This document shows, in pieces, positions 1 through 52,110 of a stretch of DNA of 64,000 bases. Numbering within the stretch: the first letter of the stretch is position 1; each line of letters opens with the position of its first letter. Made by a program: the position numbers and the translations under genes. The notes below the pieces were generated by a model. That model had not been told where the DNA came from. It searched no databases and was given only the letters and a program-made list of their open reading frames with translations. The stretch is taken from positions 124,001-188,000 of the IMG/VR virus record IMGVR_UViG_3300025770_000870. One strand, 5' to 3'.

Positions 1-167
1 ACAGACAATGATGGTTGTATCAAAACTGGTGGTAAGAATCCAGAAGTTTTTGAAAAATCGGGATTTACTAATGTTTGTGGCCAAGGATTACTCACAAAAG
101 CAATAATACTTGATGCTGAGTTAGATATTTTCTCTTTTAAATCTGTGATTTTGTCGAATACTCCCAT
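1..167 (-). CDS. Partial hypothetical protein running off the window start (MGVFDKITDLKEKISNSASS...)
   Basis: ATG at 167 on the minus strand, open to position 1, with a TTAATATATA motif at 175-184; not in the ORF track. Confidence 0.6.
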   Translation of the reverse strand, partial: MGVFDKITDLKEKISNSASSIIAFVSNPWPQTLVNPDFSKTSGFLPPVLIQPSLS

Positions 168-174
168 AATGATT

Positions 175-184
175 TATATATTAA
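175..184 (-). promoter_or_regulatory. TTAATATATA putative late promoter
   Basis: Exact copy of the recurrent motif, 8 nt upstream of the ATG at 167. Confidence 0.55.
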
Positions 185-226
185 AAATATCCTACTCTAA
201 TAGAAGTTTGTTGAAAATTAAGGTGA

Positions 227-2587
227 TTAAGCAGGGGCGTATTTACCAGTACCATTTTTTTCGGCTCTAACATCATTATAAGTAGCTAAAGCAGCTTCAC
301 ACTTCTTTATTCTTTCACCAGCGTGATGTTTGTAATAGTCCCTATTGGATACTCCGTTTTTATAGATTGCATCAGGCTTCTTTAGTGGTCGGCCGACTGA
401 ACCAGGAACCTCAAAGTCACATAAAATTGCTTCACAATAAGCACCTATTGTTTGTGTTGGCTTACCACCCTTTTGGTTGATAAAAGTACCATTCTTTATC
501 AACTTAGCTGAATTACCAGATGGAATACCAGCGAACATTTTTTGAATTCTACCTCCTTTACCGGAGCTCTGAGTCAATTCAGATATTAAAAAGGCACATT
601 GTGCCTCAAATAAATAAGGCACTGATTTCAAATATACTTCGAGTTTATTTAAAGTATCTCTTCCAATCTTAACAGTTCCGCCTCCATGTGGTCTTGGATC
701 TGTATCAAGGAATCCATTCTTCAAAGCTGAAGTCTTAACTCCTTTGTTAGTTAGATACTCACCACAAAATTTCTCCATGTTATATCTCCTTGAATATGTC
801 CATTGAGCTAAGCCGAGACCAGAGAATACTTGACATTTACCTTTCTTACACGTATAATGTTTTACTGATCCTTGTTTTGCGTTCTCTTTTGACCACCGTT
901 TTGCACCCATCCCACCGGGTACTATGTAATTTGCTTGATTTTCAATATTCCAAAATTTAAAACTTGATTCTGCATCGATATTACCACAGATACCAGCTGC
1001 TTGGTCTTTTGTAAACCCGCCCTCCTTGATTAACAATTCCATCAAAATATAAATCGCCTGTCGTTTCGTTTGGTTGTTACTAGGTGATGCTGGTGTAGGA
1101 GGTTCACCAGTAGCTGGATCAGCGTCTGGATCATTGGATCCATTCTGTTCCCGCGCCTCATCCCGCTCCTCAGCTGCTTCTGCTTCTGCCTCCTCTTGAC
1201 CTAAGAATGCAGTTTCTCGGTACTCATCGTCCAATTCACCAAGTTGTTCAAAATCATCCTGGAAAACAAACCCACCGGGTTCGATTAGTGTTAATTTACC
1301 AATTTTTGAATCTACTATTATTGATAAAGAATCTTCATATGATTTGAGAGAATCGTTACTAGTTGTTCCGCCGCTTGCACTTCCACTTGATAAAGGAAGA
1401 AACACTCCCTCAATTTCAACATTGAATGTTATTATATTTTTTTTTGATTCTACATCACCGCTTTGTGAACCCGTAATTACAGGCGCGGGCTCTTCTACTT
1501 CTTCTTCTGGTAGTAATTTTATGGGGCTTTTATACTCTACTAATTCTCCTGAATAATATAAACCTTTTTCACTTTTAGCAGGTGTTGAATTAGCCGCCCC
1601 CAATCTACCACCACCTTCGGGGTTATATATGTTACAAGCCACACCATTACCAAATATTTTATTAGTGTTCCCATCCTTCGCTGGCCACCTACCGAGTGAT
1701 GTTTCCTGTGGATCTATCAACTCACATTGACCAACATTATAATTAGGTACTTTTTTATTCCAAGCAGATAGTATATCATTTATGATATCAACATCATCAA
1801 CATTACCAGTATATTTCTTTTCTTGCTTCTCTAATTTTGTTGTGGTAGATTTCCCAGTATCGTCATAAGTCGTTTCATATCCAACCTTAGTAGATAATTC
1901 TAATAAATTATCCTCTGTTATATAAAGAACAGATTCTTCGGTCTTCCATTGTGGATCAAAAGAAGGGTCACTAGGAGTCCGTATGGTTACCGACTTAATT
2001 ATTCTAGATTTGATACTTTGATAAATTATCAAACCATTACCATCTCCAATACTACCATCACTATAATAGGATTGTGTGGGTGATACACCATCAGGTAATG
2101 CTAATTCATTACCTTCATCATCACTCCATTGTTCACCACCCAACATAGTATATGGACCAACAGTGCGCCCAAAGTATGTAGTATCTCCATTTTCATCGAC
2201 CTGACTAGAAGATGCGCCGAAGTCTGGTGATGTCCATCTAATATCTACCCTTGTTCCATTATTTAAATGATAATAATCGGATCCGAAGTTTCTTTTTCTA
2301 GCTATATTTACTGACCAGGGGTCCTGTATTATTTCAGAGCCTTTGGGTATTTTACCCGAGGCCGAATTCACATGCAACCAATCAGCTATGATTTCATCGG
2401 AACTCATATCTTTATACCTATTACCTTTATAATCCCCTTCACCTAGAATAGGACCGGTATCATAATCATTAACGTATCGAGTTAATCCATAAACGATTCT
2501 GCTTTTAAGTTTACCGTTATTTTTAAAATTCTCAACCACACGGACCATTATATCACCTGTAATTCTAACCTCTTTAACTATTCCCAT
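227..2587 (-). CDS. Large virion or baseplate protein with a C-terminal phage tail-lysozyme-like domain
   Basis: C-terminal QAAGICGNIDAESSF and GLGLAQWTYSRR match phage tail lysozyme motifs; acidic Pro-rich linker; TATAAATA upstream. Confidence 0.7.
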   Translation of the reverse strand: MGIVKEVRITGDIMVRVVENFKNNGKLKSRIVYGLTRYVNDYDTGPILGEGDYKGNRYKDMSSDEIIADWLHVNSASGKIPKGSEIIQDPWSVNIARKRNFGSDYYHLNNGTRVDIRWTSPDFGASSSQVDENGDTTYFGRTVGPYTMLGGEQWSDDEGNELALPDGVSPTQSYYSDGSIGDGNGLIIYQSIKSRIIKSVTIRTPSDPSFDPQWKTEESVLYITEDNLLELSTKVGYETTYDDTGKSTTTKLEKQEKKYTGNVDDVDIINDILSAWNKKVPNYNVGQCELIDPQETSLGRWPAKDGNTNKIFGNGVACNIYNPEGGGRLGAANSTPAKSEKGLYYSGELVEYKSPIKLLPEEEVEEPAPVITGSQSGDVESKKNIITFNVEIEGVFLPLSSGSASGGTTSNDSLKSYEDSLSIIVDSKIGKLTLIEPGGFVFQDDFEQLGELDDEYRETAFLGQEEAEAEAAEERDEAREQNGSNDPDADPATGEPPTPASPSNNQTKRQAIYILMELLIKEGGFTKDQAAGICGNIDAESSFKFWNIENQANYIVPGGMGAKRWSKENAKQGSVKHYTCKKGKCQVFSGLGLAQWTYSRRYNMEKFCGEYLTNKGVKTSALKNGFLDTDPRPHGGGTVKIGRDTLNKLEVYLKSVPYLFEAQCAFLISELTQSSGKGGRIQKMFAGIPSGNSAKLIKNGTFINQKGGKPTQTIGAYCEAILCDFEVPGSVGRPLKKPDAIYKNGVSNRDYYKHHAGERIKKCEAALATYNDVRAEKNGTGKYAPA

Positions 2588-2593
2588 ATTGTA

Positions 2594-2601
2594 TATTTAT
2601 A
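2594..2601 (-). promoter_or_regulatory. TATAAATA, identical to the T4 late promoter consensus
   Basis: Exact octamer just upstream of the tail lysozyme ATG. Confidence 0.45.
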
Positions 2602-2625
2602 ATTATCTTAACCCCCGCTATAAAA

Positions 2626-4869
2626 TTAATCAGAAACGTCAATTAATTCACCTACTACTTCTTTACCATCATCTGATAATGATGAAACTATAAGTTCGTA
2701 TATTTTACCATTACCATCACTAAGTCTATATGATTCACCAATATTATAGACCTCATTTGGTTTAGGTTCCTCAACAGGATTATCATTTGTTTCTGCATTA
2801 TCAACACCCTCTTTTGCTTTTGTTGGTATGTCTAATTCCTTGTTTAATTTACCTAATTCTTTTCTAGCTATTTTAACTTTTTGTGTTAATTTACCAGATC
2901 TCCAAGAATATCTAATGTCTATTATTAACCACTCACCGCTCATCCGCTCATCAAGATATGATTCTGTTGTTTCTGTTTGTGGTGTTCTTTTAGTATTTGT
3001 AAAGTTGACTTGTATTTTTTGATATTTATATATGTTAAAATTAGGTTGTGGTAATTGTAACTCGGCTGTTATTTTAACCATGTTATCTAAGTTAATTCTA
3101 TTTTGTGTTTCTGAATAGAGATAATTTTCATGAACATTATCCATATCAACTCTGCCTAAAAAATTAGTTCTATAATTTTCTTTAAATGATTTTTCATCAC
3201 CAGGTGCTCCCTTTAATGAGACAACATCATCCTTTTTTGTAGTTAAAGAGTCAATTTTGAATATCTGCATAATTTTTTTATTACTATCATAGTATTTGGT
3301 AATAGTAAATTGTCCCTTTTTAAGTGATTGGCTTGTTGAATTATTACTTATTTTGTATGATGAAAAATATAAGTTGTTACTTTGATTACTCTGCTCGTTA
3401 GATAAAGCGAGGGGTATTATTTTACTCTCATCACTTTTACCCACTGTTTGTGTAGATAAACCTGATGAATCAACACCAACATCTGATGATATATCTCTAT
3501 TCCATTCTTTTTCTATATCAACATAGTTAAAACACCAATAATGATCAATATAACCTAATACAAAAGAGTCATCTGATATATATGAGTGTTTTATAATATT
3601 GGAAACAAAATCTTTAAACAACATACCTGTATTTGTCCATTTCATCGAATCTTTTGTGTTATTTATATTTGAATTAAATCCTAGTTTTAATTCTTTTGAT
3701 ATCATATCAAATGTATCAAATGATGTTCCGGTATATGATTTATAAGCTATTTCATAAAATTTGGGTAAGTCAATAGATCCAGATATTGTATAATTTTTCC
3801 TCTTTCTTTGAAAGGTTTTAATCTTAAATTTTAGGTGTATTGATTTTAAATTTTCAGATCCAGAATTAAGAAATATTTCAAACTTAGTATCATCAAGTGG
3901 AGCACCTTCAGCTTTCATAATACCGAGCGTATCTTTGAATGTTACAATCACCGTTGGTGATATTCCTTCGTGATAAAGTTCAAGTGACTTAATATCCTTT
4001 TCAGGTATTTGTAGTGCATTATACCATAAAAACGGCATATAACCTTGTCCCTGTGAGTCCGTATTCTGTTGTGCGTCCTCGGTGACCTTATATTGAATTG
4101 GTGGTAATATTACTTCTGGTTTACGTATCTGTGCAATTATTGGTCTATCTCCTTCTACTTTTACTTCATCTGGGCCACTATCATCCTGTTCTATAAGTTC
4201 ATCCTCCGGTAATACTGTTATTGAAAATTCTGTGCTATCAAGATCTGGTGATGTTGGTGTTACTGCTATAATATAATCACCTGGTTTATCGAATTGTAAC
4301 CCAGAAAAGTCTATTTCTCCATTGACAACTTCTTTTTCGGTAATACCAATTATAACACCTGGTCCACTTTTAACACTTAATGTTATTTTTGTATTTATAG
4401 ACTTTGGATCTACTATCGCTGATGTTTGTTTATTTGATGGTTCTGGATCGCTCTGTGGTGTGCTCTGTGTACCAGTTTGTGGTTCTTCTTCTTCTTGTTT
4501 TGGTTCCTCTGGTGCTGGCTCCCAAACCAATCTTGGTCCAATAGTAGTGCCATAGATATCATCTATGATTCCAGCCATTTCACTTAATAGTATATCAATT
4601 GCGTATTTAAGGGATCCTGGACCATCACCCGTGAAAGGAGTAATTGCTTCTTGGGTTCCCTCTATGGTAAATTCACCAATATCAACTATTTCTTGTGCTG
4701 ATTTACCATCAATCGTAACACTACTATTTGTTGTGAATGGTTTGGGAAATCCATTTACGGTACCAAATACTGTTAATTTATTGAATTGGTTTTTATTATC
4801 TATTGTTCCGGTTATAGATTTCTCTGCATCTGATACAGGGTTTTTTACGAAGAGTGACCAATTTGACAT
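2626..4869 (-). CDS. Large structural protein, possibly baseplate hub-like
   Basis: 747 aa ORF co-oriented with the tail lysozyme gene, with acidic linkers and an Ig-like-looking segment; hub call is inference. Confidence 0.45.
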   Translation of the reverse strand: MSNWSLFVKNPVSDAEKSITGTIDNKNQFNKLTVFGTVNGFPKPFTTNSSVTIDGKSAQEIVDIGEFTIEGTQEAITPFTGDGPGSLKYAIDILLSEMAGIIDDIYGTTIGPRLVWEPAPEEPKQEEEEPQTGTQSTPQSDPEPSNKQTSAIVDPKSINTKITLSVKSGPGVIIGITEKEVVNGEIDFSGLQFDKPGDYIIAVTPTSPDLDSTEFSITVLPEDELIEQDDSGPDEVKVEGDRPIIAQIRKPEVILPPIQYKVTEDAQQNTDSQGQGYMPFLWYNALQIPEKDIKSLELYHEGISPTVIVTFKDTLGIMKAEGAPLDDTKFEIFLNSGSENLKSIHLKFKIKTFQRKRKNYTISGSIDLPKFYEIAYKSYTGTSFDTFDMISKELKLGFNSNINNTKDSMKWTNTGMLFKDFVSNIIKHSYISDDSFVLGYIDHYWCFNYVDIEKEWNRDISSDVGVDSSGLSTQTVGKSDESKIIPLALSNEQSNQSNNLYFSSYKISNNSTSQSLKKGQFTITKYYDSNKKIMQIFKIDSLTTKKDDVVSLKGAPGDEKSFKENYRTNFLGRVDMDNVHENYLYSETQNRINLDNMVKITAELQLPQPNFNIYKYQKIQVNFTNTKRTPQTETTESYLDERMSGEWLIIDIRYSWRSGKLTQKVKIARKELGKLNKELDIPTKAKEGVDNAETNDNPVEEPKPNEVYNIGESYRLSDGNGKIYELIVSSLSDDGKEVVGELIDVSD

Positions 4870-4900
4870 GAACTATATATTTGCCATCACATCTTCTGTC

Positions 4901-6505
4901 CTATAAGTTTATTTTAATTGTTTTATATGGGTATTTTCGTTTATCATACATACGTGCTCTCTCTTTGAAATGTCTATATAATATATTATTCATATTCTTC
5001 GGATCAAAAACATCTACTAAGTCAAATATCATAGCCTTTGTCTTATCCGTGTGTAAACGTAAGGCTCTACCAATTGATTGTATTATAATTTGCTCTGATT
5101 TGAAAGAATCTACAAATATCACATTAAATATAGCATTAATAGATACACCAGTTGATAGTGTACCATAAGAAGCAACTAATACTCTAACTTTACCATCAGT
5201 TTCCTCCATTTGTTTCTTAATAACTTCCCTCTTTTTACCCGATACACCACCATCAATATAATAAAATTCTTTATCTGGTAATTCCTCTGATAATTTATTC
5301 ATTATCTTTTGACCATATTCAATCGTGTGAAATAATAAAAGTGTATTTGATTCACATTTATCAACTATCTTCTTGATAAAGTCTAATCTTTTATCCGAAA
5401 CATGAATATATTCCTTTTCTATTTGAAAAGCTTCTTTACCATAACCACCTTTCCTTATTTGTTCCATTCTATCTGCGAATTCTAAGTCATTATGATTCAT
5501 AATGACAGCCTTTATTTCCATAGCTGATATTATACCCTTCTTCTTTAATTCATCAGCAGAAACTTCTGTTATCTTAGGACCTAAAACTGATTGTATTGTT
5601 AGTATTTCACAAGTATCATCCTCAGGGAATGTACCAGATACACCAAACCTTGAATATGCTTTACCAAACGTTCTCTTTAATATACTTAACATCGTTTTTG
5701 CTTTAGCTCCATGTGCCTCATCAGTAACAACTGTGTGAAATTGGTCAAAGAATTCTTTCGGCCATTTTTCTAATGATTGATAAGTTCCGATATAAATATT
5801 AGCATCTTGTGTACCTGTGTGTTTTCTTGGTCTTTCTGACATAACTTCCTCAACCCTTAAATCAAAGGGTACATGAGTTCCTTCTATATGGTCTATCTTT
5901 TTATCATCCATTTCTATTAAATTATTAACACCATGGTTATATTCTACAATATTATCATAAAATTGAGTAACTAATGTTATCGATGGTACTATTATTAGAA
6001 ATTTAGCTTTAGGAGTATGTTTAAGTGTATAAAACATAACAATTGATATGATTAATGATTTACCACCTGATGTAGCAACCTCAGCCATACAATATCTATT
6101 CTTTAATATTTTGTAAGCTGATTCAACTTGGTGGTCATAAGGTATAAATGGTATCCAAGTACCATCTTTTTTCTTAACTTTATGTTCTTTAAAAAATTCT
6201 TTACAAAAATCATGAACTTTTTCTAAGGTAACATCTCTATTTAATGGGAAATCTTCTTTATTTTCTAATATAAAAGGTGCTCCGATTTCTTTACAACCTT
6301 TCAAAGCTTCTTTCCAAAGACCGATGTTTATTCTACCGTCCTTAAAATATGATTGTTGTCCATTCCAAACACCCATCTTGAATGCTGGCATATATCGATA
6401 ACCTTTAACGTGTCTAGATAACCACAAATCCATTTGGTGGTATTCGATTCTCGTAGCTTCACTTACGACAATTTCTTCTGTTTCTTTATCATATCTAAAC
6501 TTCAT
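4901..6505 (-). CDS. uvsW: UvsW-like SF2 DNA helicase
   Basis: Walker A-like ATSGGKS, DEAH box, SGT motif III, QSIGRALR motif VI; T4 UvsW-like N-terminus (YRYMPAFKMGVWNG). Confidence 0.9.
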   Translation of the reverse strand: MKFRYDKETEEIVVSEATRIEYHQMDLWLSRHVKGYRYMPAFKMGVWNGQQSYFKDGRINIGLWKEALKGCKEIGAPFILENKEDFPLNRDVTLEKVHDFCKEFFKEHKVKKKDGTWIPFIPYDHQVESAYKILKNRYCMAEVATSGGKSLIISIVMFYTLKHTPKAKFLIIVPSITLVTQFYDNIVEYNHGVNNLIEMDDKKIDHIEGTHVPFDLRVEEVMSERPRKHTGTQDANIYIGTYQSLEKWPKEFFDQFHTVVTDEAHGAKAKTMLSILKRTFGKAYSRFGVSGTFPEDDTCEILTIQSVLGPKITEVSADELKKKGIISAMEIKAVIMNHNDLEFADRMEQIRKGGYGKEAFQIEKEYIHVSDKRLDFIKKIVDKCESNTLLLFHTIEYGQKIMNKLSEELPDKEFYYIDGGVSGKKREVIKKQMEETDGKVRVLVASYGTLSTGVSINAIFNVIFVDSFKSEQIIIQSIGRALRLHTDKTKAMIFDLVDVFDPKNMNNILYRHFKERARMYDKRKYPYKTIKINL

Positions 6506-6614
6506 CTCATGTTTATATATAAAAAAGTAATCTTTGTTTATTTTGGGTTTTTTCGAGGTTTTTTACAGAGGGAGGGAAAAAATATGAATATATAATAAAA
6601 AATAATTTAAAATC

Positions 6615-6989
6615 ATGAAAAGTATAATATCTTTTTTTAAGAGATTGTTTGGTAAAAAAACTACACAAGTTGTTGTTAAGGCTGAAGTTAAAATAGAAGC
6701 TGTTAAAGAAGTTACTAAACCAATCGTAAAGGCTAAACCAATCGTAAAGGCTAAATCAACAAAGGACAAGTCTAAAGTTGAAAAGCCTGTAACAGCTAAG
6801 GATATCAAAGCTAAGGTTAAAAAACCAGTGAGTAAAAAGTCAACGGTTAAAAAGTCAGATACTAAGAAATCGACTAATAAAAAGTCAACTCCTAAAGTTA
6901 AAAAGGAATCGACTAATAAAAAGTCAACGGTTAAAAAGGAATCTACTAAGAAGAGAGCTCCTAGAAAGTCAACTGCTAAAAAGGATTAA
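6615..6989 (+). CDS. Lys-rich histone H1-like putative DNA-binding protein
   Basis: About 30% Lys with repeats KPIVKA and STNKKSTVKKES; ATATATA motif upstream; terminator downstream. Confidence 0.65.
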   Translation: MKSIISFFKRLFGKKTTQVVVKAEVKIEAVKEVTKPIVKAKPIVKAKSTKDKSKVEKPVTAKDIKAKVKKPVSKKSTVKKSDTKKSTNKKSTPKVKKESTNKKSTVKKESTKKRAPRKSTAKKD

Positions 6990-7006
6990 ATTAATTGATT
7001 TTTAAC

Positions 7007-7039
7007 AAAAAACCCACTCAAATATGAGTGGGTTTTTTT
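7007..7039. terminator. Bidirectional intrinsic terminator
   Basis: AAAAAACCCACTCA-aata-TGAGTGGGTTTTTT between convergent genes. Confidence 0.85.
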
Positions 7040-13696: not shown

Positions 13697-14455
13697 ATGC
13701 TAAATTATAAAGAGTATTTAAAGGAGGCCCAAGATAATCAAGTCGTTGTGTTGGATGATGGACAAGGTGGTAATATGTTTAAGACTGTTAAAAATGGTAG
13801 TAAGAACTCAATTACTTATCTTAATGCTGTTATAAAAAGGTTTATCGAAAGTGTTTATGGATCATCTGGGTTTGTTTATGGTAAACATACTGATATATTT
13901 ATCGATAATAAGATAATTAATGGTGAGTATATATCAAAGATGGTTAATAATTACACCATTTTTAAAAATGTGATAAGAATTAATAATATTAAAGAGGAAG
14001 AATCTTTTTATAATTTTATGTTATCTAATCTGAATAATATTTATTCACCAAATGGTAAATTCTTTTTAGAACAATCATTACCTATTTTAATAAACACAAC
14101 TAGAAGGGGAAATGTACTTGAAAAAATGGCTAAGGAATCCTTTTTAAAGTATTCTAAAGAAAAAGATATCGAGATTACTATACAAAACCCTTCTGTTGAT
14201 GAAGATATAAACGGTGTTGATTTCAAATTCTTATCCAATGGTAGAAGTTTTACTGTTCAAGTAAAGCCATTTACTGATTATAAGTATATTGGTGATAAAA
14301 TTTTCATAAAGACAGAAGGATCTTTATCATTGAATACAAACTACTTGATACTATGTGATGGTAAGAATTGTATTAAATTAAGAAATACACCCTCTAATCC
14401 AGTTAAAATAAAAGGTAATACTTTTATTTCAAGTAAATCTAATCTACTTATTTAA
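13697..14455 (+). CDS. PD-(D/E)xK-like nuclease-fold protein with CTS-like N-terminus
   Basis: EDINGVDFKF...FTVQVKP pattern; N-terminus MLNYKEYLKE; TTAATATATA at 13682-13691. Confidence 0.55.
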   Translation: MLNYKEYLKEAQDNQVVVLDDGQGGNMFKTVKNGSKNSITYLNAVIKRFIESVYGSSGFVYGKHTDIFIDNKIINGEYISKMVNNYTIFKNVIRINNIKEEESFYNFMLSNLNNIYSPNGKFFLEQSLPILINTTRRGNVLEKMAKESFLKYSKEKDIEITIQNPSVDEDINGVDFKFLSNGRSFTVQVKPFTDYKYIGDKIFIKTEGSLSLNTNYLILCDGKNCIKLRNTPSNPVKIKGNTFISSKSNLLI

Positions 14456-15770
14456 ATCCACCGAATATATCCATTACCACACTCAATCTTCTTGTTATTT
14501 CTGGCATACCTAATGGTTCAATAATAGAATTAATTGGTGATAGTATTGATTTCTCAAATTGTATATCATAATCTATCTCAGGAGCAAATTCAATCGGGTA
14601 AGACCCTCTAGCATAAGCAAATGTGGAATTAACTGATTTATCTTTACAGATATAATATTTAATCTTTGTACCAGATTTCATAAATTCATACTTATCTTGT
14701 AATTTCTTATCATTGTTCAATAAGTAATTATGATAAGCGGCCGCTTTAACAGCAAAGTGAGCTCCACTTATAAATTGTAATGGTAATGTTTTATCATTTA
14801 AAACTTTCTCATCATATTTATTACAAGATGATTGCATTGCGATATCATCAACATCAGCCAATTCAAATTCCTTTCTAAGACCTTTTACCAATTTAAGTAA
14901 ATCCTTTATATTGAATGTATCGGGATTCTCAAATAAATACTCTACTATCCCAACAATCTTATCACGAGCAAAGGCTGGTGTGGATGACCTAACAAGTTCA
15001 ACTCCTTTAGGATAAATATATTTCAATCTATCATATGGAATACCATCCTCATATAAAATATGTTGTATGTATTTTTTCTTAGCAATATTTATAATTGATT
15101 CTGATATTCTTTCAAGTTCAAAATCTTCTTTGTTTTCAACACCATATGATTCTGCGTGTTTATCTAAACAATCTTTGAAGTAACCCTCATATTTTATTTG
15201 GTCAACTCCTAATATAAAATCAACCTCAGTAGACCAGTTCCAGATAATATCATTTGTTAAAACTCCATCATCTATCATCTTATTTAACTTCCTATCTTTC
15301 ACGAAGTTACCATCTATTAAAACTAACCCATAATCTTCTTTCAGAAGTTCTGTAAATTCCGTGATATCTTTTGACATACCCAAATAATTTGGATTATCTG
15401 TTTCTATCAAATCTCTTGATAGTATAATAAATTTCTTATCAATTGAAGATAGATATTCATCGTTAAATACTTGATCTCTCCAAGTACAATGGTCCATACA
15501 AGGTTTGAATGAAACAAAAATTGAATCGGTATCACCATAGATACTAACATCCTCTTTCGTATCAATTGGTGTGATATCTTTTATATTTAATTGTTTGTGT
15601 AGCTCAGTATCAAGATGCCATTGATTATACCAATAATCTTGGTTATCATCATCCATCTTTCTAGTCAATTCTCTACCCTCTGCTGTTATAGTACCTGCAA
15701 CGTGGTTGTTATAAAGTATGAAGTATGGTGTTGCGAAGGCTCCATAAGAACCATTCAATACAAGTTTTAG
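14448..15770 (-). CDS. Family B DNA polymerase, C-terminal portion (second half of motif B, motif C and thumb); no usable start codon upstream of the invariant Lys
   Basis: LKLVLNGSYG (frame open up to an in-frame TGA at 15773-15771), GTITAEGR, YGDTDS, AKKKY, KGVELVRSS, YDIQFEK. Confidence 0.93.
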   Translation of the reverse strand, partial: LKLVLNGSYGAFATPYFILYNNHVAGTITAEGRELTRKMDDDNQDYWYNQWHLDTELHKQLNIKDITPIDTKEDVSIYGDTDSIFVSFKPCMDHCTWRDQVFNDEYLSSIDKKFIILSRDLIETDNPNYLGMSKDITEFTELLKEDYGLVLIDGNFVKDRKLNKMIDDGVLTNDIIWNWSTEVDFILGVDQIKYEGYFKDCLDKHAESYGVENKEDFELERISESIINIAKKKYIQHILYEDGIPYDRLKYIYPKGVELVRSSTPAFARDKIVGIVEYLFENPDTFNIKDLLKLVKGLRKEFELADVDDIAMQSSCNKYDEKVLNDKTLPLQFISGAHFAVKAAAYHNYLLNNDKKLQDKYEFMKSGTKIKYYICKDKSVNSTFAYARGSYPIEFAPEIDYDIQFEKSILSPINSIIEPLGMPEITRRLSVVMDIFGGFK

Positions 15771-15807
15771 TCATTTACCCCCACTTAAAATAAAGCGGGG
15801 GTGATTA
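15768..15807 (-). other. 40-nt coding gap in polymerase motif B, a candidate ribosomal bypass element
   Basis: mRNA reads CUU|UAA UC ACCCCCGCUU UAUUUU AAGUGGGGGU AAA UGA CUA|AAA; 10-bp hairpin at 15777-15802; removing 40 nt restores QLALKLVLNGSYG. Confidence 0.8.
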
Positions 15808-15866
15808 AAGAGCGAGTTGAAGGGCATTGTAGTAATCTACTTCCTTTTTCAACTCGCTCGCTTTAA
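15805..15866 (-). other. Long RNA hairpin overlapping the putative take-off and stop codons
   Basis: UUAAAG-CG-AGCGAGUUGAA pairs with UUCAACUCGCU-CUUUAA (6 bp + 11 bp), plus an inner GUAG/CUAC stem. Confidence 0.8.
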
Positions 15867-15909
15867 TTTTTAATGACTCGATTTTTTTTATTTTTTCGGT
15901 TTTTGTCAT
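15805..15909 (-). CDS. 34-aa polymerase leader ORF (fingers helix and first half of motif B)
   Basis: MTKTEKIKKIESLKIKASELKKEVDYYNALQLAL*; the end DYYNALQLAL matches the D-x2-Q-x-A-x-(K) part of PolB motif B; missed by the ORF track. Confidence 0.88.
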   Translation of the reverse strand: MTKTEKIKKIESLKIKASELKKEVDYYNALQLAL

Positions 15910-15974
15910 ATTTAATAAATTTGTTATAAAGGGTACTTATACATTTTGATATATAAATAAACCTCTTAAAGTAT

Positions 15975-16061
15975 ATGATAAAGGAAGAAAAAGTTTCAGT
16001 AAAAATCGGACCACGTAACATAAAATATTTTAATATGTGTGGATATGATGTTACACTTTAG
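15975..16061 (+). pseudogene. N-terminal stub of a homing-endonuclease-like gene
   Basis: MIKEEKVSVKIGPRNIKYFNMCGYDVTL* resembles the stub at 10761 and typical phage free-standing endonuclease N-termini. Confidence 0.5.
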
Positions 16062-16433
16062 TCAGGCGCAATTTGGTCAGATAACAGAACTATACGCCTA
16101 TATGGTATTTGTTATGCTGATTGATAACCACTTATATTCTCACCATCATAATAGTCGATACCTATCCAATTTTCATAATCTTCTACATTCACGTTTATAT
16201 AATTCCCATTGTGGTAATAATTCACCAGGTATAATAATAAACAATATAGGATCTGCCATTAGCTCTGTACCTCTTTTAACCTTTGTTTGTTTTGATTTTA
16301 ATTTTACAATATCAACCTTTGATACATTATCAACTCCATATCTCTCTAAACAGGTTTCTTTTATTTTAGATATGATTGATTTTTTATTTATCTTATATTG
16401 ATTATAGTAATGGAAATAGTAGTAACCTATCAC
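16060..16433 (-). pseudogene. Degenerate HNH-type homing endonuclease fragment
   Basis: KIKETCLERYGVDNVSK repeat motif, WELYKRECRRL, then frameshifted ENWIGIDYYDGENI; multiple stops. Confidence 0.6.
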
Positions 16434-16495
16434 TATTTGATTAATCAGATATATTATATTTTAAATTTAATATATAATAAAAATAACAGTATCAA

Positions 16496-16879
16496 ATGAG
16501 GTTAAAGAAGTTTAATAGTTTCAAAATTAATGAATCAGAAGAGTTGATGGAAACTCCTGTTGAGACTGGTAGCAAAGCATCTACATTAACTGGTGAGGTT
16601 ACTCTTTATAGACTCACTTCTCATCCGGTTGTTGATCTTTCTTCACCTGGTGAGTATTATGTATGTGATAAAGGTGATATCGACCCTTCTATATTAGATA
16701 AGAAAGAAAGTTCTGAGTTATATTTAATTACGGTTACTTGTGATTCTTCTAATATTGACTTAGATAAATCTGAAATGGAGATTGCTAACTTAGGAAACGA
16801 TTCTATCGTAGCAGTTAAAGATGATAATGTTTGTAAGGTTATTAGTGTTACTCCTTATGGAAACAATCCAGTAGATTAA
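16496..16879 (+). CDS. Hypothetical protein with CTS-like N-terminus
   Basis: MRLKKFNSFKINE; TTAATATATA at 16467-16476. Confidence 0.75.
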   Translation: MRLKKFNSFKINESEELMETPVETGSKASTLTGEVTLYRLTSHPVVDLSSPGEYYVCDKGDIDPSILDKKESSELYLITVTCDSSNIDLDKSEMEIANLGNDSIVAVKDDNVCKVISVTPYGNNPVD

Positions 16880-16904: not shown

Positions 16905-17807
16905 TTAATAGATAATTGGTCCATCAAACCCCAAACGAACATTTTGACCATCAAACACAATTGTTTCCGTTATCTCAGAAGGCTTAAATGTATTTTTGTG
17001 ATAAACTTTCATTGGTCTTCTAAAGTCTTCTTCTGGTGGAGTATAGACATAATTAAAACACTCACATCCACCACCCGTTCTTTTCCAAGACTTGGTTAAA
17101 AAAAAGTTATCACCTATTAATTCCTTTATGTGAAAATAAATATAATTCTCTTTTGAGTATTCATTGATAGGCATTAAAGATACTAAACCAATATCATTTA
17201 TCTCAACAGAGTTTGCCCATTCTAAATATTTAAATACTTCTTCTGGTGTATCTATATAATTCTTTATTAAGTTACATCTGAATTGTACTTGGTGTGGATG
17301 TGTTTGTAAATGGCTTATAGCCTTTATCTCTTCTGATGTAGGAGTTTTGCATTTGAATATCTCATCATTAATCTTATCATCATAGTGGTGACGACTAAGT
17401 TGTATATAATCATATCTTTTAGCAATAGGGTCGTTAAATAACTTCTCCCATCTAAATCCGTCTGTATTCAGTGATAATTCACAATCAGGTGCATATTCCA
17501 CACCAACATTGGACATTTCCAGAAAATTATCCCAATATAAAGTTGGTTCTCCACCAGAAATGGCTATTTTTCTAATCTTAATTCTATCTGATATATGTTG
17601 TAAGACTTCTTTATATTTTTTACCGTTCCATTTGGATGCGTCTGAGTGATATGTACAGAATGAGCACTTAGCGTTACAGAATTTAGTTCTAACATAAAGA
17701 TTTATATAAGGTTCTTCAATGGCGTTTCCCTCCTCCTCTCCAAATAAGGCACAATTATGAGTTATTAGCTTAATTTCTTTCCCGAATAATTCGATTGATT
17801 CTAACAT
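16905..17807 (-). CDS. Radical SAM enzyme of unknown specificity
   Basis: CNAKCSFC (CxxxCxxC), SGGEPT, LNTDG, QLSRHHY. Confidence 0.88.
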   Translation of the reverse strand: MLESIELFGKEIKLITHNCALFGEEEGNAIEEPYINLYVRTKFCNAKCSFCTYHSDASKWNGKKYKEVLQHISDRIKIRKIAISGGEPTLYWDNFLEMSNVGVEYAPDCELSLNTDGFRWEKLFNDPIAKRYDYIQLSRHHYDDKINDEIFKCKTPTSEEIKAISHLQTHPHQVQFRCNLIKNYIDTPEEVFKYLEWANSVEINDIGLVSLMPINEYSKENYIYFHIKELIGDNFFLTKSWKRTGGGCECFNYVYTPPEEDFRRPMKVYHKNTFKPSEITETIVFDGQNVRLGFDGPIIY

Positions 17808-17817
17808 TATTTATTTA

Positions 17818-18078
17818 TTAACAAGATGATCTTGAATATGATGAATCATCGTTTCGAAATCTCGAAATTGATGATTTTGGTGTTGGTGTTACTTTTTTAT
17901 TAATTCGTGGCTCGATATCATTTTCGATACAAAACTTTATATAAACAGATCTTTTCAAATCGCCTGTGTTTATTAAATCTTCACAAGCATCATTAAATTT
18001 TGATTCAAGGTTAGTACCTTCATATCTACCTTTGTAGAATTGTAAAAGTTTTGCTAAAAGTTCTAATTGTTGGTCCAT
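17818..18078 (-). CDS. Hypothetical protein
   Basis: 86 aa ORF tightly packed between nadR and the radical SAM gene. Confidence 0.7.
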   Translation of the reverse strand: MDQQLELLAKLLQFYKGRYEGTNLESKFNDACEDLINTGDLKRSVYIKFCIENDIEPRINKKVTPTPKSSISRFRNDDSSYSRSSC

Positions 18079-18096
18079 TGTGAATTCTTATTTTAG

Positions 18097-19116
18097 TTAT
18101 ATATTAAATTGTGAATTTACAATTTCAATAGATTTGCTTAATCTATCTCTCCAATTACCACCCACTTCTATATAATTACAATTGTACTTTTCCAATTCTG
18201 ATTTAATAACATTATAATGTTCCATCCTTTCTTCTAAAAACTGTCGTGTTCCGTCTTGAACACCATCACAATCAGGTTTCAATAGTAAGTATAAATCATA
18301 ATTACTATTTTTATATACTTTATCTAGTAATATGTTTTCAATACTTTTATAACCATTTGGAAAATACATTTTTGAGAAGAGGTATGTTGTTATATCCTCT
18401 GTATCACAGAATAATAATTTATTGGATGTCTTTATTTTTTGATTTTCCAATTCTTGTCGACCAACAGATATTGGGATAAAGTCTTCTATTCCTATTTTAT
18501 TACCATTTCTTTCAAATACAGTTCTGCCATATTCCTCAACAAAATTTGTGTTATAGTATTTAGCTAAATTTTCACTCATTGTTGATTTCCCAACAGATTC
18601 CGGCCCCATAATAACAATTCTCTTAACGAAGTAGGGTTTTATTTCATCCGGTATAAATTCCCAACTATCAAAGGGGTTAGTTCTTACTTTAGTTCCTGAT
18701 ATAGGAAATTTCTTTCTTTCTTTATCAACTAGATAGTGTTTTATACCCAAATATTTAGCAAAATCATCACCGTAATTCTCAGAAGTGAATACACAATCTA
18801 ATTTACCAACAAATTTATAAACAAATGGAACCCAATAAGAATAAAATTCATCAAGTGATTTACATTCGTGTTCATATTGTGGCATCTCACTATCATCAAC
18901 AGAGTGTATTATGACATTTGGGTTACTTTCATATATTTCTCGTAAAGATTTTACTCTTAATTTACCAGGGATTGTTTGTGTAGGATTATGACAAGCTAAA
19001 ACATGAACAACTTCCGAATTTTCCAAAGCGGTGTCTATTAAATAAAGGTGCCCGGTGTGTAATCCGTAGAATTTACCCAATACTAAACTACTTTTGTACT
19101 TTTTATCCATTTCCAT
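18097..19116 (-). CDS. nadR: Bifunctional NadR-type NMN adenylyltransferase and ribosylnicotinamide kinase
   Basis: GKFYGLHTGH (HxGH), FTSENYG, Walker A GPESVGKST, EEYGR, CDT, YDLYLLLKPD...DGTR; no HTH domain. Confidence 0.92.
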   Translation of the reverse strand: MEMDKKYKSSLVLGKFYGLHTGHLYLIDTALENSEVVHVLACHNPTQTIPGKLRVKSLREIYESNPNVIIHSVDDSEMPQYEHECKSLDEFYSYWVPFVYKFVGKLDCVFTSENYGDDFAKYLGIKHYLVDKERKKFPISGTKVRTNPFDSWEFIPDEIKPYFVKRIVIMGPESVGKSTMSENLAKYYNTNFVEEYGRTVFERNGNKIGIEDFIPISVGRQELENQKIKTSNKLLFCDTEDITTYLFSKMYFPNGYKSIENILLDKVYKNSNYDLYLLLKPDCDGVQDGTRQFLEERMEHYNVIKSELEKYNCNYIEVGGNWRDRLSKSIEIVNSQFNI

Positions 19117-19631
19117 AATCCAATTGATGCTAATATTAAGAATAAACCATATACATATGATGATACGTCTAAGCCATTTGATGAGAATAATACTATTAAT
19201 AGAATGTCATTTATAATCCAAAGAATCCAAGCTTCTATTTTCTTCTTCACTAATAGGAATGTAGCCATAACACCCAATGTCATTACAGCAGAGTCTAGAA
19301 ATGGCATATTACCACCATATTCACTTGTTATACAAAACGTGGTCATGTATAGAATAATGGTGCTGGTTGTTAGATATCCTAATTGCTTTTTATTTAACCA
19401 ACTAATAGCCAATTCTTCTTTTGGTTTGCTCCAGTTTATCCAACCTAGTATAGATTGGACTAGAAATACACCTTGTAAAACTAAATCACCAAGTAAGTTA
19501 TGGTTGTAAAAGATAACAGAGTAAAAGATAACTCCTACGATACCAAATGGCCAACATAATATGTTATCTTTTACTGTTAGAATAACAGCTAGTAACGTGA
19601 ATAAAACAGCTACTGCCTCAATAATATCCAT
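19083..19631 (-). CDS. pnuC: PnuC-family nicotinamide riboside or thiamine transporter
   Basis: Multiple TM helices; CWPFGIVG, GWINW, FLDSAVM, KKKIEAWILWIIND. Confidence 0.92.
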   Translation of the reverse strand: MDIIEAVAVLFTLLAVILTVKDNILCWPFGIVGVIFYSVIFYNHNLLGDLVLQGVFLVQSILGWINWSKPKEELAISWLNKKQLGYLTTSTIILYMTTFCITSEYGGNMPFLDSAVMTLGVMATFLLVKKKIEAWILWIINDILLIVLFSSNGLDVSSYVYGLFLILASIGLWKWIKSTKVV

Positions 19632-21613
19632 TAAATCTTAAATTTAATTGTAGCGAAGAAGTTGAATGGTGGATTAACAAAGAAGTGTCTATCTGTACCA
19701 ACTGCGTATCCATTAGTGTAATAACTTTCATTAGTTATGTTATTTACTCTAATACTTAAACTGTGTTGTTTATAGAATTTATAATCAACTTGAGCATTTA
19801 ATACCACAAAATCTGGTGTTGTGAGTGTGTTCTCCATATCAATATAAGACTCTGAGTGGTACTTCACATCAAATCCAACTCTTATTCTATCTTTTGAATC
19901 TTTAATCACCACACCTTGGTTAATTATCAAATTAGGTGTGTATAATGGACTAAATTCTTTCCCATCATCATTAATTCTGTTATAAGAGTATGATGATGTA
20001 TTAACTAATAATAAGTTAATTTTCTTTTTACTAAATAAACTTAAAGTCATATCTAATTCAATACCACTTCTAAAAGAGTTTTCAACATTAGTCATTAACG
20101 GTAAACCATTTGAACCAATTGCTCCTAATAATGTTATTTCATTTTTGAAATCCATATAGTATAGATTACCTTGTAACTTAAAGTTATCTAATGTTATATT
20201 AGTACCTAATTCATAATCAACAACCGATTCTGGTTTAACATCTATGTAACTAATAGGATCATCTTCTCCCATAAAAATATCATTTCTTGTTGGTTCTCTT
20301 TGTGATTGACCAACAGAAGCATAGAAGTTATAGTGTTTACATTTCGTGAACATTATACCACCTTTTGGGTTGAAGAATGTCCATTCAAATGGTGCCATAT
20401 CCATAGTACCTTGATACTTGAAATCAACGTATCTAACTTGAGCATCTCCGAAAAGAGTAAACTTCTTTATATCATATCCGAATTTAACAAATGATGATAC
20501 TTCGTTTTTAAGTCCTTTATTAGAATATAGTTCATCTGTGTTTGCTAATACAGTCATAGCATGTCGTCTATCATACATATTACCACTAACACCAATATTC
20601 AATCTATATTTATTACCAGTTAAGTTATAGTTAGAGGTTAATCCATAGAAGTTAGAACCTAAATTGAAGTTAAGAACATCATCCCCTCCACCAAGTGGTA
20701 GTAAATCTAATCCCCAATCTCCATCTAATCTATTATAGAAAGCGGTAGTCGTTAAATTTGACTTGTTAAAAAAGTGTTTGTGTTTTAAGATAACCATACT
20801 TTGTGTAAAGTCGTCATTTTCTCTAGTAGTATTATAGTTAGTTCTTGGTTCTGATTTTATATCATCTTCTGAAACTGCGAACCAAGCCATTTCATTAGTT
20901 GTGTGTCCATTGAATGCTGTTATTTTAACAAAATCCTTTTCTCCATAATAACCACCACTTAAAAAGAATGATTGTCCTTCACCACCTGAGTTATATTTGT
21001 ATCCATCACTCGCGTAATTTGAATATCTAGTATAAAAGGCTGTTTTATTTTTTAGTAATCCTGTTGAGTTTTCAATACTAACTCTATAAGTATTAAATGA
21101 TCCATATCCAATTTGTCCTTCTGTTCCTTTCTTTAATCCCGTTGGTGATTCAAAATTAATAGAACCAGCATATGAGGAAACACCGTTTGTTGATGTACCA
21201 ACACCACGTTGTATCTGCATTGACCTAATTGAGTTTGTAAAATCTGGGTAATTTGAGAAATATACACCTTGGTCCTCTGGTTCATTAAGAGGAACCCCAT
21301 CGAGTGTCATATTAATTCTAGTTTGGTCAATACCTCTCAATCTAAAGTAAGTATATCCCATATTGTGACCGCCATCTGTTGATGATGTTACACTTGGTGT
21401 TGTGTTTAATAACAACGGTAATTCTTGTGTATGATACATAACATCTATATCATCTTTACTGATTGTTTTCTGAGTGACTGGTGTTTTAGATCCAGCTCTA
21501 ATTCCTTGTATAGTAACTTCTTCAATTTGCACCATTGATGTGTCAACCTTTAGAGTATCCTGTGAATACGATGTTGATGTTGCTAATAAAAATAAAAATA
21601 GTAATTTCTTCAT
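19631..21613 (-). CDS. TonB-dependent outer-membrane receptor (Bacteroidota vitamin-uptake type)
   Basis: Signal peptide; plug with GYTYFRLRGIDQTRIN...QIQRGVGTSTNG; beta-barrel ending in alternating aromatic residues; 1-nt overlap with pnuC. Confidence 0.92.
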   Translation of the reverse strand: MKKLLFLFLLATSTSYSQDTLKVDTSMVQIEEVTIQGIRAGSKTPVTQKTISKDDIDVMYHTQELPLLLNTTPSVTSSTDGGHNMGYTYFRLRGIDQTRINMTLDGVPLNEPEDQGVYFSNYPDFTNSIRSMQIQRGVGTSTNGVSSYAGSINFESPTGLKKGTEGQIGYGSFNTYRVSIENSTGLLKNKTAFYTRYSNYASDGYKYNSGGEGQSFFLSGGYYGEKDFVKITAFNGHTTNEMAWFAVSEDDIKSEPRTNYNTTRENDDFTQSMVILKHKHFFNKSNLTTTAFYNRLDGDWGLDLLPLGGGDDVLNFNLGSNFYGLTSNYNLTGNKYRLNIGVSGNMYDRRHAMTVLANTDELYSNKGLKNEVSSFVKFGYDIKKFTLFGDAQVRYVDFKYQGTMDMAPFEWTFFNPKGGIMFTKCKHYNFYASVGQSQREPTRNDIFMGEDDPISYIDVKPESVVDYELGTNITLDNFKLQGNLYYMDFKNEITLLGAIGSNGLPLMTNVENSFRSGIELDMTLSLFSKKKINLLLVNTSSYSYNRINDDGKEFSPLYTPNLIINQGVVIKDSKDRIRVGFDVKYHSESYIDMENTLTTPDFVVLNAQVDYKFYKQHSLSIRVNNITNESYYTNGYAVGTDRHFFVNPPFNFFATIKFKI

Positions 21614-42578: not shown

Positions 42579-42600
42579 AATTAAGATTAATAAGAATAAT

Positions 42601-42635
42601 AAAAAAACCCACTCAAAATTTGAGTGGGTTTTTTT
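42601..42635. terminator. Bidirectional intrinsic terminator
   Basis: AAAAAAACCCACTCAAA-a-TTTGAGTGGGTTTTTTT. Confidence 0.85.
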
Positions 42636-42668
42636 ATTATTGTCTATCCCCAATAGGTCGCCTAGTAT

Positions 42669-43926: not shown

Positions 43927-43955
43927 AAAAAACCCTCGAAATTCGAGGGTTTTTT
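43927..43955 (-). terminator. Intrinsic terminator after the tail sheath gene
   Basis: AAAAAACCCTCGAA-a-TTCGAGGGTTTTTT. Confidence 0.85.
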
Positions 43956-51941: not shown

Positions 51942-51970
51942 GGAAAAAAACAGGAAATAGTTAATATATT

Positions 51971-51998
51971 AAAAAACCGGGATATTTCCCGGTTTTTT
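51971..51998 (+). terminator. Intrinsic terminator
   Basis: AAAAAACCGGGA-tatt-TCCCGGTTTTTT. Confidence 0.85.
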
Positions 51999-52110
51999 AA
52001 TTTTAAATAATTTTTTTTATTTACATAGTCGATTTTATTAAAAAAAAGAGGGCGGTATAATTTTCTATAAAAAATGTCGAATATATAAAGATGTAAATAA
52101 TTATTAAATT

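Follow-up and report, generated by a model that had tools for sequence, protein, structure and literature searches.

Ribosomes appear to hop over a 40-nt hairpin insert that interrupts the catalytic motif B of a DNA polymerase gene in a huge phage. The insert belongs to a widespread, mobile and homing endonuclease-linked family whose conserved signals favor programmed translational bypass, although hopping is inferred from comparative sequence evidence alone (probability of roughly 0.75). Efficient programmed bypassing of tens of nucleotides has been documented in only two natural systems, the T4 gene 60 family, whose cassette was called unique as late as 2022 and is found only in topoisomerase genes, and the byps of yeast mitochondria. 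The family described here would be a second phage family of such elements, apparently undescribed, since we found no report of bypassing in a polymerase or in huge phages in a full-text literature that lacked most subscription journals.

A precise insert in motif B

The interruption lies on the minus strand of the window, the whole 64,000-nt stretch of DNA that was analyzed. An ATG at 15909 opens a 34-codon ORF (15808-15909; MTKTEK...DYYNALQLAL), which corresponds to the first fingers helix of the polymerase C-terminal half, aligns to residues 1-34 of the uninterrupted ortholog (L001:4018-5442) and ends in CTT (15810-15808) followed directly by TAA (15807-15805). The coding gap, counted from this stop through the landing triplet, occupies 15807-15768. 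In the +1 frame, the putative landing triplet CTA (15770-15768) is preceded by an in-frame TGA and followed by AAA (15767-15765), the motif B lysine codon with which the second ORF (14448-15767) begins; this ORF encodes KLVLNGSYG, YGDTDS and the thumb in 439 codons plus the stop. The first canonical start in its frame, TTG at 15758, is downstream of the lysine codon.

In LR745206, a relative with 85% protein identity, the same gene is an uninterrupted 474-aa ORF reading ...GCT CTT AAA TTA GTA..., so the window carries a precise 40-nt insertion between the leucine and lysine codons. The insert is present base for base in six assemblies from different samples, and more than 50 diverged variants exist in other contigs from several projects. 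A sequencing or assembly artifact, for which we found no support, is therefore very improbable. The motif B and motif C assignments were confirmed by a Pfam search (DNA_pol_B, E=5e-15) and by alignment of the uninterrupted ortholog to herpesvirus PolB structures over KxxxNSxYG and YGDTDS. However, the 473-aa product, which the preliminary description treated as a phage DNA polymerase, is only the C-terminal half of a split family B enzyme. Split genes are annotated in Chryseobacterium phage MA9V-2, and the two halves lie hundreds of kb apart in LR756501, while neither a Pfam search of 20 large ORFs nor tblastn with the MA9V-2 N-half found an N-half in the window.

A family of inserts with reading-frame signals

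The insert is not unique to this lineage. Of 136 related loci, 76 carry a 36-49-nt insert at one of six positions within ten codons of motif B, and removal of the insert always restores the 24-aa motif B stretch exactly (QLALKLVLNGSYG in the window). Among 51 distinct inserts, lengths are spread over all three residues mod 3 (15/17/19), and those divisible by 3 carry in-frame stops. A zero-frame stop occurs at the 1st (8) or 2nd (32) codon after take-off in 40/51 inserts, against 1/102 in the other two frames. Reassignment of a stop codon was rejected as an explanation, since all three stops occur in the inserts and a frame change is needed in two thirds of them. In 32 of 51 inserts, a sense codon separates the take-off codon from the stop, which differs from T4, and how A-site decoding would be avoided in these variants is unexplained.

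The codons flanking the gap are also matched. In the window, CUU (15808-15810) and CUA (15768-15770) are synonymous, and across the family the landing triplet shares its first two bases with the take-off codon in 33/33 distinct inserts of five classes. The match is only partial for most inserts of the sixth (Tyr|Gly) class, where 7/18 share the first two bases and 14/18 match TAY at 2 or more of 3 positions, against 19% of neighboring triplets. Premature cognate dinucleotides are depleted in the tail of the gap (5 observed, 11.7 expected). The T-to-A asymmetry of take-off and landing codons carries little weight, since NNT and NNA are simply the commonest codons in this genome. No tRNA genes that might explain the reading of CUU and CUA were found in the window.

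All 51 inserts contain a hairpin of 9-16 bp (mean dG -21.7, z -6.6) whose stem sequences vary in a compensatory way. In the window, the hairpin (15777-15802) has a 10-bp stem (ACCCCCGCTT / AAGTGGGGGT) with a 6-nt loop, ends 6 nt before the landing triplet and is the only C5..G5 hairpin in the 64 kb; the insert alone folds at -18.1 kcal/mol (z = -6.3). The other strong hairpins in the window are A-run/T-run and terminator-like, and no further copy of the element was found there. The hairpin begins 5-6 nt after the take-off codon in the window and in most variants, and thus cannot sit in the A site as the T4 take-off stem-loop does; only six extended variants start directly after the take-off codon.

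Furthermore, insert-bearing genes usually possess a long-range 5' stem-loop (mean z -3.7 to -5.9) that is absent from 43 insert-free genes (mean z -0.63) and moves with the take-off site. In the window, its 5' arm is at 15848-15859 (GAGCGAGTTGAA, codons of A-S-E-L-K), and its 3' arm at 15810-15821 (TTCAACTCGCTC) ends in the first base of the take-off codon. In every insertion class the 3' arm abuts the take-off codon, while loci that lack the stem have an extended 16-bp gap hairpin. Across 23 sequences of classes 9/10, 89% of cells in this 12-bp helix are paired, against 31-38% when slid, and 7 of 12 pairs have double changes, which 0/500 shuffles reached. For another class, class 18, the fixed-register covariation test was only modest (69% paired against up to 57% when slid) because members use different registers, so that the claim for this class rests on per-sequence energies.

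These patterns support the central inference of the preliminary description, that this is a new translational bypass element in an essential replicative enzyme. In this reading, the ribosome would translate the 34-codon leader and reach CUU in the P site with UAA in the A site, whereupon peptidyl-tRNA-Leu leaves CUU and the mRNA slides by about 40 nt. Sliding may be helped by zipping of the 5' stem-loop as its 3' arm leaves the ribosome, and by the compact gap hairpin. The tRNA would then re-pair at CUA and decoding resume at AAA, giving one 473-aa polypeptide with a predicted ...NALQLALK / LVLNGSYGAFATPYF junction.

Two of the parallels to T4 gene 60 proposed in the preliminary description are not clearly supported. 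The GGGGGU lying 6 nt before CUA was taken as an SD-like element, and the G-run is always on the 3' arm of the hairpin, but none of 47 long ORFs in the window has an SD-like motif upstream. This is Bacteroidota-style initiation and makes a role for SD-antiSD pairing, one known landing aid, doubtful. The lysine-rich leader is the ordinary fingers helix, shared by insert-free orthologs, and is therefore not evidence for a nascent-peptide signal; no distinctive peptide signature was found.

Alternatively, the insert could be removed from the mRNA by an unknown hairpin-guided cleavage and ligation, as a mini-intron, followed by ordinary translation. A conserved hairpin with flanking long-range helices could equally be a recognition structure for an RNA-processing enzyme, and early stops could serve as a fail-safe for unprocessed mRNA. 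We consider this unlikely. The inserts are far below the size of any known self-splicing intron, and an Rfam search of 15500-16500 gave only a chance-level hit; the 40-nt insert likewise fits neither a group I/II intron, with a ribozyme core of at least 200 nt, nor an intein, since it has stops in frame. Excision needs no duplicated codon, yet the flanking triplets in the five classes stay matched when the site shifts by a codon. The stop is confined to the 1st or 2nd zero-frame codon rather than lying anywhere in the insert, and the 5' stem ends exactly at the last decoded codon; these are reading-frame and P-site features.

Termination at UAA followed by re-initiation, yielding two chains that reassemble, is less likely still. 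This polymerase already works as separate N and C halves, and ATG and GTG triplets occur in several gap tails. However, no start codon is present in the frame of the second ORF at or upstream of the lysine codon, TGA lies directly before CTA in that frame, the ATG in the tail is out of frame, and many variants have none. In class 18, re-initiation downstream would lose all of motif B.

Association with a homing endonuclease

An HNH-like endonuclease gene lies upstream of the polymerase gene in 35 of 61 insert-bearing loci, with a remnant in 6 more, and upstream in 0 of 44 insert-free loci. Its assignment rests on PHROG 3339 and 12131 ('homing endonuclease'), DUF7487 repeats, an invariant DH..N..N C-terminal motif and best fold matches to HNH domains, though these were weak (E 0.08-0.2), and a PDB sequence search with the endonuclease profile gave no hit. 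The window retains a decayed remnant at 16118-16394 (-), covering residues ~220-320 of ~375 with a frameshift (tblastn E about 1e-15; PHROG 3339, E=7.7e-6).

The preliminary description did not note that the insert arrived in this lineage as part of a roughly 670-nt cassette (15768-16435, -) comprising the endonuclease remnant, a new upstream region, a diverged leader and the insert. Relative to L065, among the closest insert-free relatives, the flanks are 86-90% identical and the leader only 73%, and 15913-16435 has no counterpart. The nearest insert-free relatives have TTG/TTA at the take-off position, so CTT came with the cassette. Near-identical backbones differ in insert state or class, and the PolB tree needs at least 33 changes; one locus (L133) has two inserts eight codons apart. 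We infer that the insert disrupts the endonuclease's target in the conserved motif B DNA, which would protect the carrier from self-cleavage, as shown for T4 MobA and gene 60.

It is also possible, though improbable, that a parasitic insertion has inactivated this copy, with polymerase function supplied from elsewhere or by a co-infecting phage. Most insertions look recent on the tree and the endonuclease in the window has decayed. However, the second ORF is intact over 439 codons, the gene is equally open in the 76 insert-bearing loci, and dN/dS is 0.085 against the nearest relative. The lineage recurs unchanged in six assemblies, and the inserts carry conserved, covarying, frame-aware signals that a dead insertion would not maintain. 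The complete 634-kb relative has a single C-half and no other is present in the window, although the rest of the 483-493-kb genome could not be searched. A cassette that inactivated the only PolB C-half could not spread.

Comparison with known bypass systems

The closest known system is the T4 gene 60/MobA cassette, a 50-nt coding gap in the topoisomerase II large-subunit gene (Manning & Atkins, bioRxiv 10.1101/2022.08.31.505936). In both cases, the host gene is essential and split, a freestanding HNH-type homing endonuclease sits next to the start of the downstream half, and the insert lies 33-46 codons into that half in a highly conserved stretch. Both have a stop at or just after take-off, a stem-loop in the gap, a 5' stem-loop and an A/U-rich tail before landing, and in both the endonuclease is often pseudogenised or lost while the insert stays, and insertions look recent and mobile. 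Nevertheless, the interrupted gene is PolB, the gaps are 36-49 nt, the hairpin does not include the take-off codon, and most variants have one sense codon before the stop. The 5' stem-loop is strong and covarying here but poorly conserved in the gene 60 family, and there are six insertion positions rather than two adjacent ones. The endonuclease is transcribed divergently from the interrupted gene, and the endonucleases show no detectable similarity (tblastn of 39 endonuclease ORFs against T4 1-7000 gave nothing better than E=0.1).

The mitochondrial byps of Magnusiomyces capitatus (Lang et al. 2014) are likewise short (27-55 nt) inserts in essential genes of an AT-rich genome, with a poorly decoded A-site codon after take-off, sometimes several inserts per gene, and mobile behavior. 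However, byps are spread over many genes rather than confined to ten codons of one gene, have no linked endonuclease gene, and use an unassigned sense codon rather than a stop as the slow A-site codon. Freestanding homing endonucleases of T-even phages (Seg and Mob families) and 'fractured genes' also resemble this system in the placement of the endonuclease gene beside a conserved target, co-conversion of flanks and patchy distribution among near-identical genomes, but donor immunity here would come from a hairpin insert within the coding sequence that must be bypassed, rather than from silent polymorphisms, an intron or an intein.

A more speculative possibility, which we hold only tentatively, is that this is a mechanistically distinct hop: a portable module working on SD-independent Bacteroidota ribosomes, in which take-off is set by the 5' stem-loop zipping up behind the ribosome, a compact hairpin is carried across, and landing can occur without full codon-anticodon re-pairing, as in the Tyr|Gly class. 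Such a module could slide codon by codon along the gene and act twice within eight codons (L133). An independent family in another essential enzyme, with another endonuclease and in another host phylum, would turn a curiosity into a recurrent evolutionary solution and show how a homing endonuclease protects its carrier by breaking a conserved DNA target without breaking the protein. Its more than 50 natural variants, with six take-off sites, five amino-acid/tRNA types, forms with and without the 5' stem, stops at position 1 or 2 and one putative double hop, constitute a ready-made mutational series. There is no evidence for the element in other genes: a scan of viral contigs for CCCCC..GGGGGTAAATGA gave 22 hits, of which seven are the known PolB sites and 15 are unrelated chance contexts. 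In practice, gene callers will split or truncate these polymerase genes in huge-phage genomes, and annotation pipelines need to take such inserts into account.

A precise insertion in a split polymerase gene

The interrupted reading frame proposed in the preliminary description is confirmed. On the minus strand, ATG 15909 opens a 34-codon ORF (MTKTEKIKKIESLKIKASELKKEVDYYNALQLAL) that ends with CTT (15810-15808) followed by TAA. Forty bases later, in the +1 frame and directly after a TGA in that frame, come CTA (15770-15768), AAA (15767-15765) and CTT GTA TTG AAT GGT TCT TAT GGA, after which the frame stays open to 14448. The first canonical start in that frame is TTG 15758, downstream of the Lys codon. 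The gap holds a 10-bp hairpin (15802-15777), the only C5..G5 hairpin in the window, and the insert alone folds with z = -6.3 (z = -3.7 in its 101-nt context). The downstream ORF matches Pfam DNA_pol_B, and its uninterrupted ortholog aligns with solved herpesvirus PolB over KxxxNSxYG and YGDTDS.

The 40 nt are a precise insertion and not an error. The 634-kb uncultured huge phage LR745206, which is about 80% identical in DNA over this region and 85% identical in the C-half protein, has one 474-aa ORF reading ...GCT CTT AAA TTA GTA... at this point. Six assemblies from different samples (loci L002-L005, L064 and L066) carry the 40 nt base for base, while the closest relatives, L065 (97% protein identity), L067/68, L069 and L070, lack the insert.

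The window is phage DNA, encoding a terminase, a tail lysozyme and a UvsW-like helicase, with about 30% G+C. None of 47 long ORFs has an SD-like motif upstream, and upstream regions are A/T-rich, which is the initiation style of Bacteroidota. There are no tRNA genes in the 64 kb. This fits a Bacteroidota host; the cultured relatives infect Chryseobacterium, Flavobacterium, Tenacibaculum and Prevotella. On the minus strand, 16905-21613 holds a run of host-like genes: a radical SAM protein (16905-17807), a NadR-like cytidylyltransferase/AAA_28 protein (18097-19116), a PnuC nicotinamide-riboside transporter (19083-19631) and a TonB-dependent receptor with plug domain (19631-21613). Perfect hairpins flanked by an A-run and a T-run (AAAAAACCCACTC...GAGTGGGTTTTTT type) at 7007-7038, 42595-42641, 43927-43955 and 51968-52001 look like bidirectional intrinsic terminators, and the same motif recurs in relatives.

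The polymerase is gp43-like but split into two genes throughout this lineage. In the cultured relative Chryseobacterium phage MA9V-2 (150871-154172), a 495-aa N-half and a 425-aa C-half are separated by three genes, two hypothetical and one encoding a TnpB-family RNA-guided endonuclease, and in the 735-kb phage LR756501 the halves lie about 620 kb apart. The 473-aa product is therefore the fingers-palm-thumb half only. The N-half is not in the window, and LR745206 has one place only that matches the C-half.

A family of inserts with conserved signals

Using the C-half as query, we collected 59 viral and 80 metagenomic loci. Of 136 loci that could be parsed, 76 carry an insert of 36-49 nt and 60 do not. 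In insert-free genes the stretch from DYYN to YFILY is always 24 residues, and in every insert-bearing gene removal of the insert restores those 24 residues exactly. The inserts occupy six positions within ten codons, listed here by junction and by take-off and landing triplets: class 9 (A/L, GCT to GCT or GCA), class 10 (L/K, CTT to CTA, the class found in the window), class 13 (V/L, GTT to GTA or GTT), class 16 (G/S, GGT to GGT), class 17 (S/Y, TCT to TCA) and class 18 (Y/G, TAT to various triplets, with partial matches only). One metagenomic relative (L133:2390-2505) has both a class-10 and a class-18 insert eight codons apart in the same motif B, and the 5' stems for the two are nested. 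Insert lengths fall equally into the three residues mod 3 (15/17/19), and the inserts seen with lengths divisible by 3 all carry in-frame stops. Some relatives have much larger interruptions or length changes at or near motif C (YGDTDS) of the same gene (1.6-2 kb in L041, L045 and L049; about 475 nt in L047; about 360 nt in L033/L035/L036; a variable region, residues 145-213, in L051-L060), which may be introns, inteins or further endonuclease insertions.

All 51 distinct inserts fold into one hairpin of 9-16 bp (mean -21.7 kcal/mol, z -6.6), in which the outer C-run/G-run is kept while the inner stem varies in a compensatory way. The hairpin starts 5-6 nt after the take-off codon, or directly after it in six variants with extended 15-16-bp stems, and is followed by a tail of median 9 nt that includes the landing triplet. 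A zero-frame stop is the 1st (8) or 2nd (32) codon after take-off in 40 of 51 inserts, compared with 1 of 102 in the other two frames, and TAA, TAG and TGA are all used.

The landing triplet shares its first two bases with the take-off codon in 33 of 33 distinct inserts of classes 9, 10, 13, 16 and 17. In class 18 this holds for only 7 of 18, although 14 of 18 match TAY at 2 of 3 positions, compared with 19% of neighboring triplets. Premature cognate dinucleotides in the tails are about half the expected number (5 against 11.7). Furthermore, class 9 and class 10 inserts with almost the same hairpin differ by a one-codon shift on both flanks, so the match is preserved when the site moves.

The stretch from the leader ATG to the take-off codon folds far better in insert-bearing genes (class means -21 to -33 kcal/mol, z -3.7 to -5.9) than in 43 insert-free genes (-10.5 kcal/mol, z -0.63). 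The cause is a 10-13-bp long-range helix whose 3' arm ends at the take-off codon in every class: A-S-E-L-K codons pair with L-Q-L-A-L codons in classes 9 and 10, AGCTTCAGAG pairs with CTCTGAAGCT in class 13, and I-E-S-L-K codons pair with L-N-G-S codons in classes 16-18. In the window, the arms are 15859-15848 and 15821-15810. For classes 9 and 10 (23 sequences), 89% of cells pair, against 31-38% when slid; seven of 12 pairs show double changes, which 0 of 500 shuffles reach, and insert-free genes pair at 49% in the same columns. For class 18, a fixed register gives only modest support, because the register differs among members. The five loci without this stem (L021, L025, L094, L103 and L113) are among those with the extended gap hairpin. 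A further 5-bp helix, in which AUGAC at the start codon (15905-15909) can pair with GUCAU in the E-S codons (15873-15877), is predicted in many insert-bearing leaders; the Ser codon TCA is enriched in insert-bearing leaders but is also present in a few insert-free ones.

Endonuclease linkage and mobility

An ORF family of 255-404 aa lies about 80-100 nt upstream of the leader and is transcribed divergently from it. Among loci with at least 500 nt of upstream sequence, it is found in 39 of 70 insert-bearing loci and in 0 of 53 insert-free loci; with at least 1300 nt, there are 35 full copies plus 6 remnants among 61 insert-bearing loci and 0 upstream copies among 44 insert-free loci. Insert-free loci of one clade (L028, L029, L031, L032, L138, L139, L141 and L142) carry, just downstream of the PolB C-half and about 1.5 kb downstream of the leader, an ORF similar to the N-terminal 175 residues of this protein. 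The protein has an N-terminal CxxC..CxxC, DUF7487 repeats (E=1e-19), PHROG 'homing endonuclease' matches and an invariant C-terminal W.G.D.Y..YP..DHK.S..GF.N..NLC.TKR..NS.K motif. HNH nuclease domains are the best, though statistically weak, structural matches to an AlphaFold model (pLDDT 86.5). Long forms accompany classes 9, 10 and 13, while short forms accompany classes 16-18.

The window retains only a frameshifted remnant of this HNH-like gene, with DUF7487 repeats (16394-16118, minus strand), which runs in the same direction as the polymerase gene, whereas intact copies in relatives are divergent from it. Compared with L065, the flanks are 86-90% identical but the leader only 73%, and window 15913-16435 has no counterpart in L065. 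The nearest relatives have TTG or TTA where the window has the CTT take-off codon, and identity resumes right after the landing triplet. So the endonuclease gene, upstream region, leader with the 5' arm, take-off codon and insert came in as one block of about 670 nt.

On a maximum-likelihood tree of 87 C-half proteins, the insert classes are scattered, needing at least 33 changes, and near-identical backbones differ in state. L010 (class 9) and L015 (class 18) have identical proteins, and L065, the nearest relative of the window, is insert-free. The insert-free genes of L095 and L016 are almost identical, including the leader, to the class 18 genes of L107 and L018, respectively, which suggests either precise loss of the insert or very recent gain. 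A cassette that destroyed the only C-half of the replicative polymerase could not spread through progeny phage, and in the window lineage the downstream ORF shows dN/dS 0.085 against L065 (dS 0.20).

Translational interpretation and comparison with known systems

The central interpretation of the preliminary description, a programmed translational bypass, is supported by strong comparative evidence and can be extended to a family of homing-endonuclease-linked bypass cassettes, although hopping itself is inferred and has not been shown experimentally. At the DNA level, we infer that the insert interrupts the endonuclease's target in motif-B DNA and so protects the carrier, the function demonstrated for the T4 MobA/gene 60 cassette, as summarized by Manning & Atkins. 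During translation, we infer that peptidyl-tRNA-Leu leaves CUU while UAA occupies the A site; the 5' stem, whose 3' arm is inside the ribosome at that moment, zips up as the mRNA moves and biases movement forward; the hairpin shortens the path; and the tRNA re-pairs at CUA, with AAA decoded next. This mechanism does not explain the sense codon before the stop in most variants, the loose landing triplets of class 18, or the conserved C-on-5'/G-on-3' polarity of the stem in a host evidently without SD usage. Alternatively, the insert could be excised from the RNA, but frame-aware stops, P-site-aware codon matching and a stem that tracks the last decoded codon are translation-level features, and we therefore rank the hop above RNA excision. 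Of the T4 parallels claimed in the preliminary description, the SD-like element is doubtful and the leader gives no evidence for a nascent-peptide signal.

Our full-text literature searches found no report of bypassing in a polymerase or in huge phages, and the 2022 survey found the gene 60 cassette only in topoisomerase genes and does not mention polymerases. The closest system is the T4 gene 60/MobA cassette, with which the inserts share a split essential gene, an adjacent HNH-type endonuclease that often decays, a position tens of codons into the downstream half, matched codons, a stop, stem-loops, and recent mobile insertions. They are not members of that family: the gene differs, the endonuclease shows no detectable similarity, the hairpin does not include the take-off codon, and the 5' stem is the best-conserved feature here but the least conserved there. 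The mitochondrial byps of Magnusiomyces share the short inserts, tolerant codon matching and multiple inserts per gene, but differ in lacking an endonuclease and in being spread over many genes.
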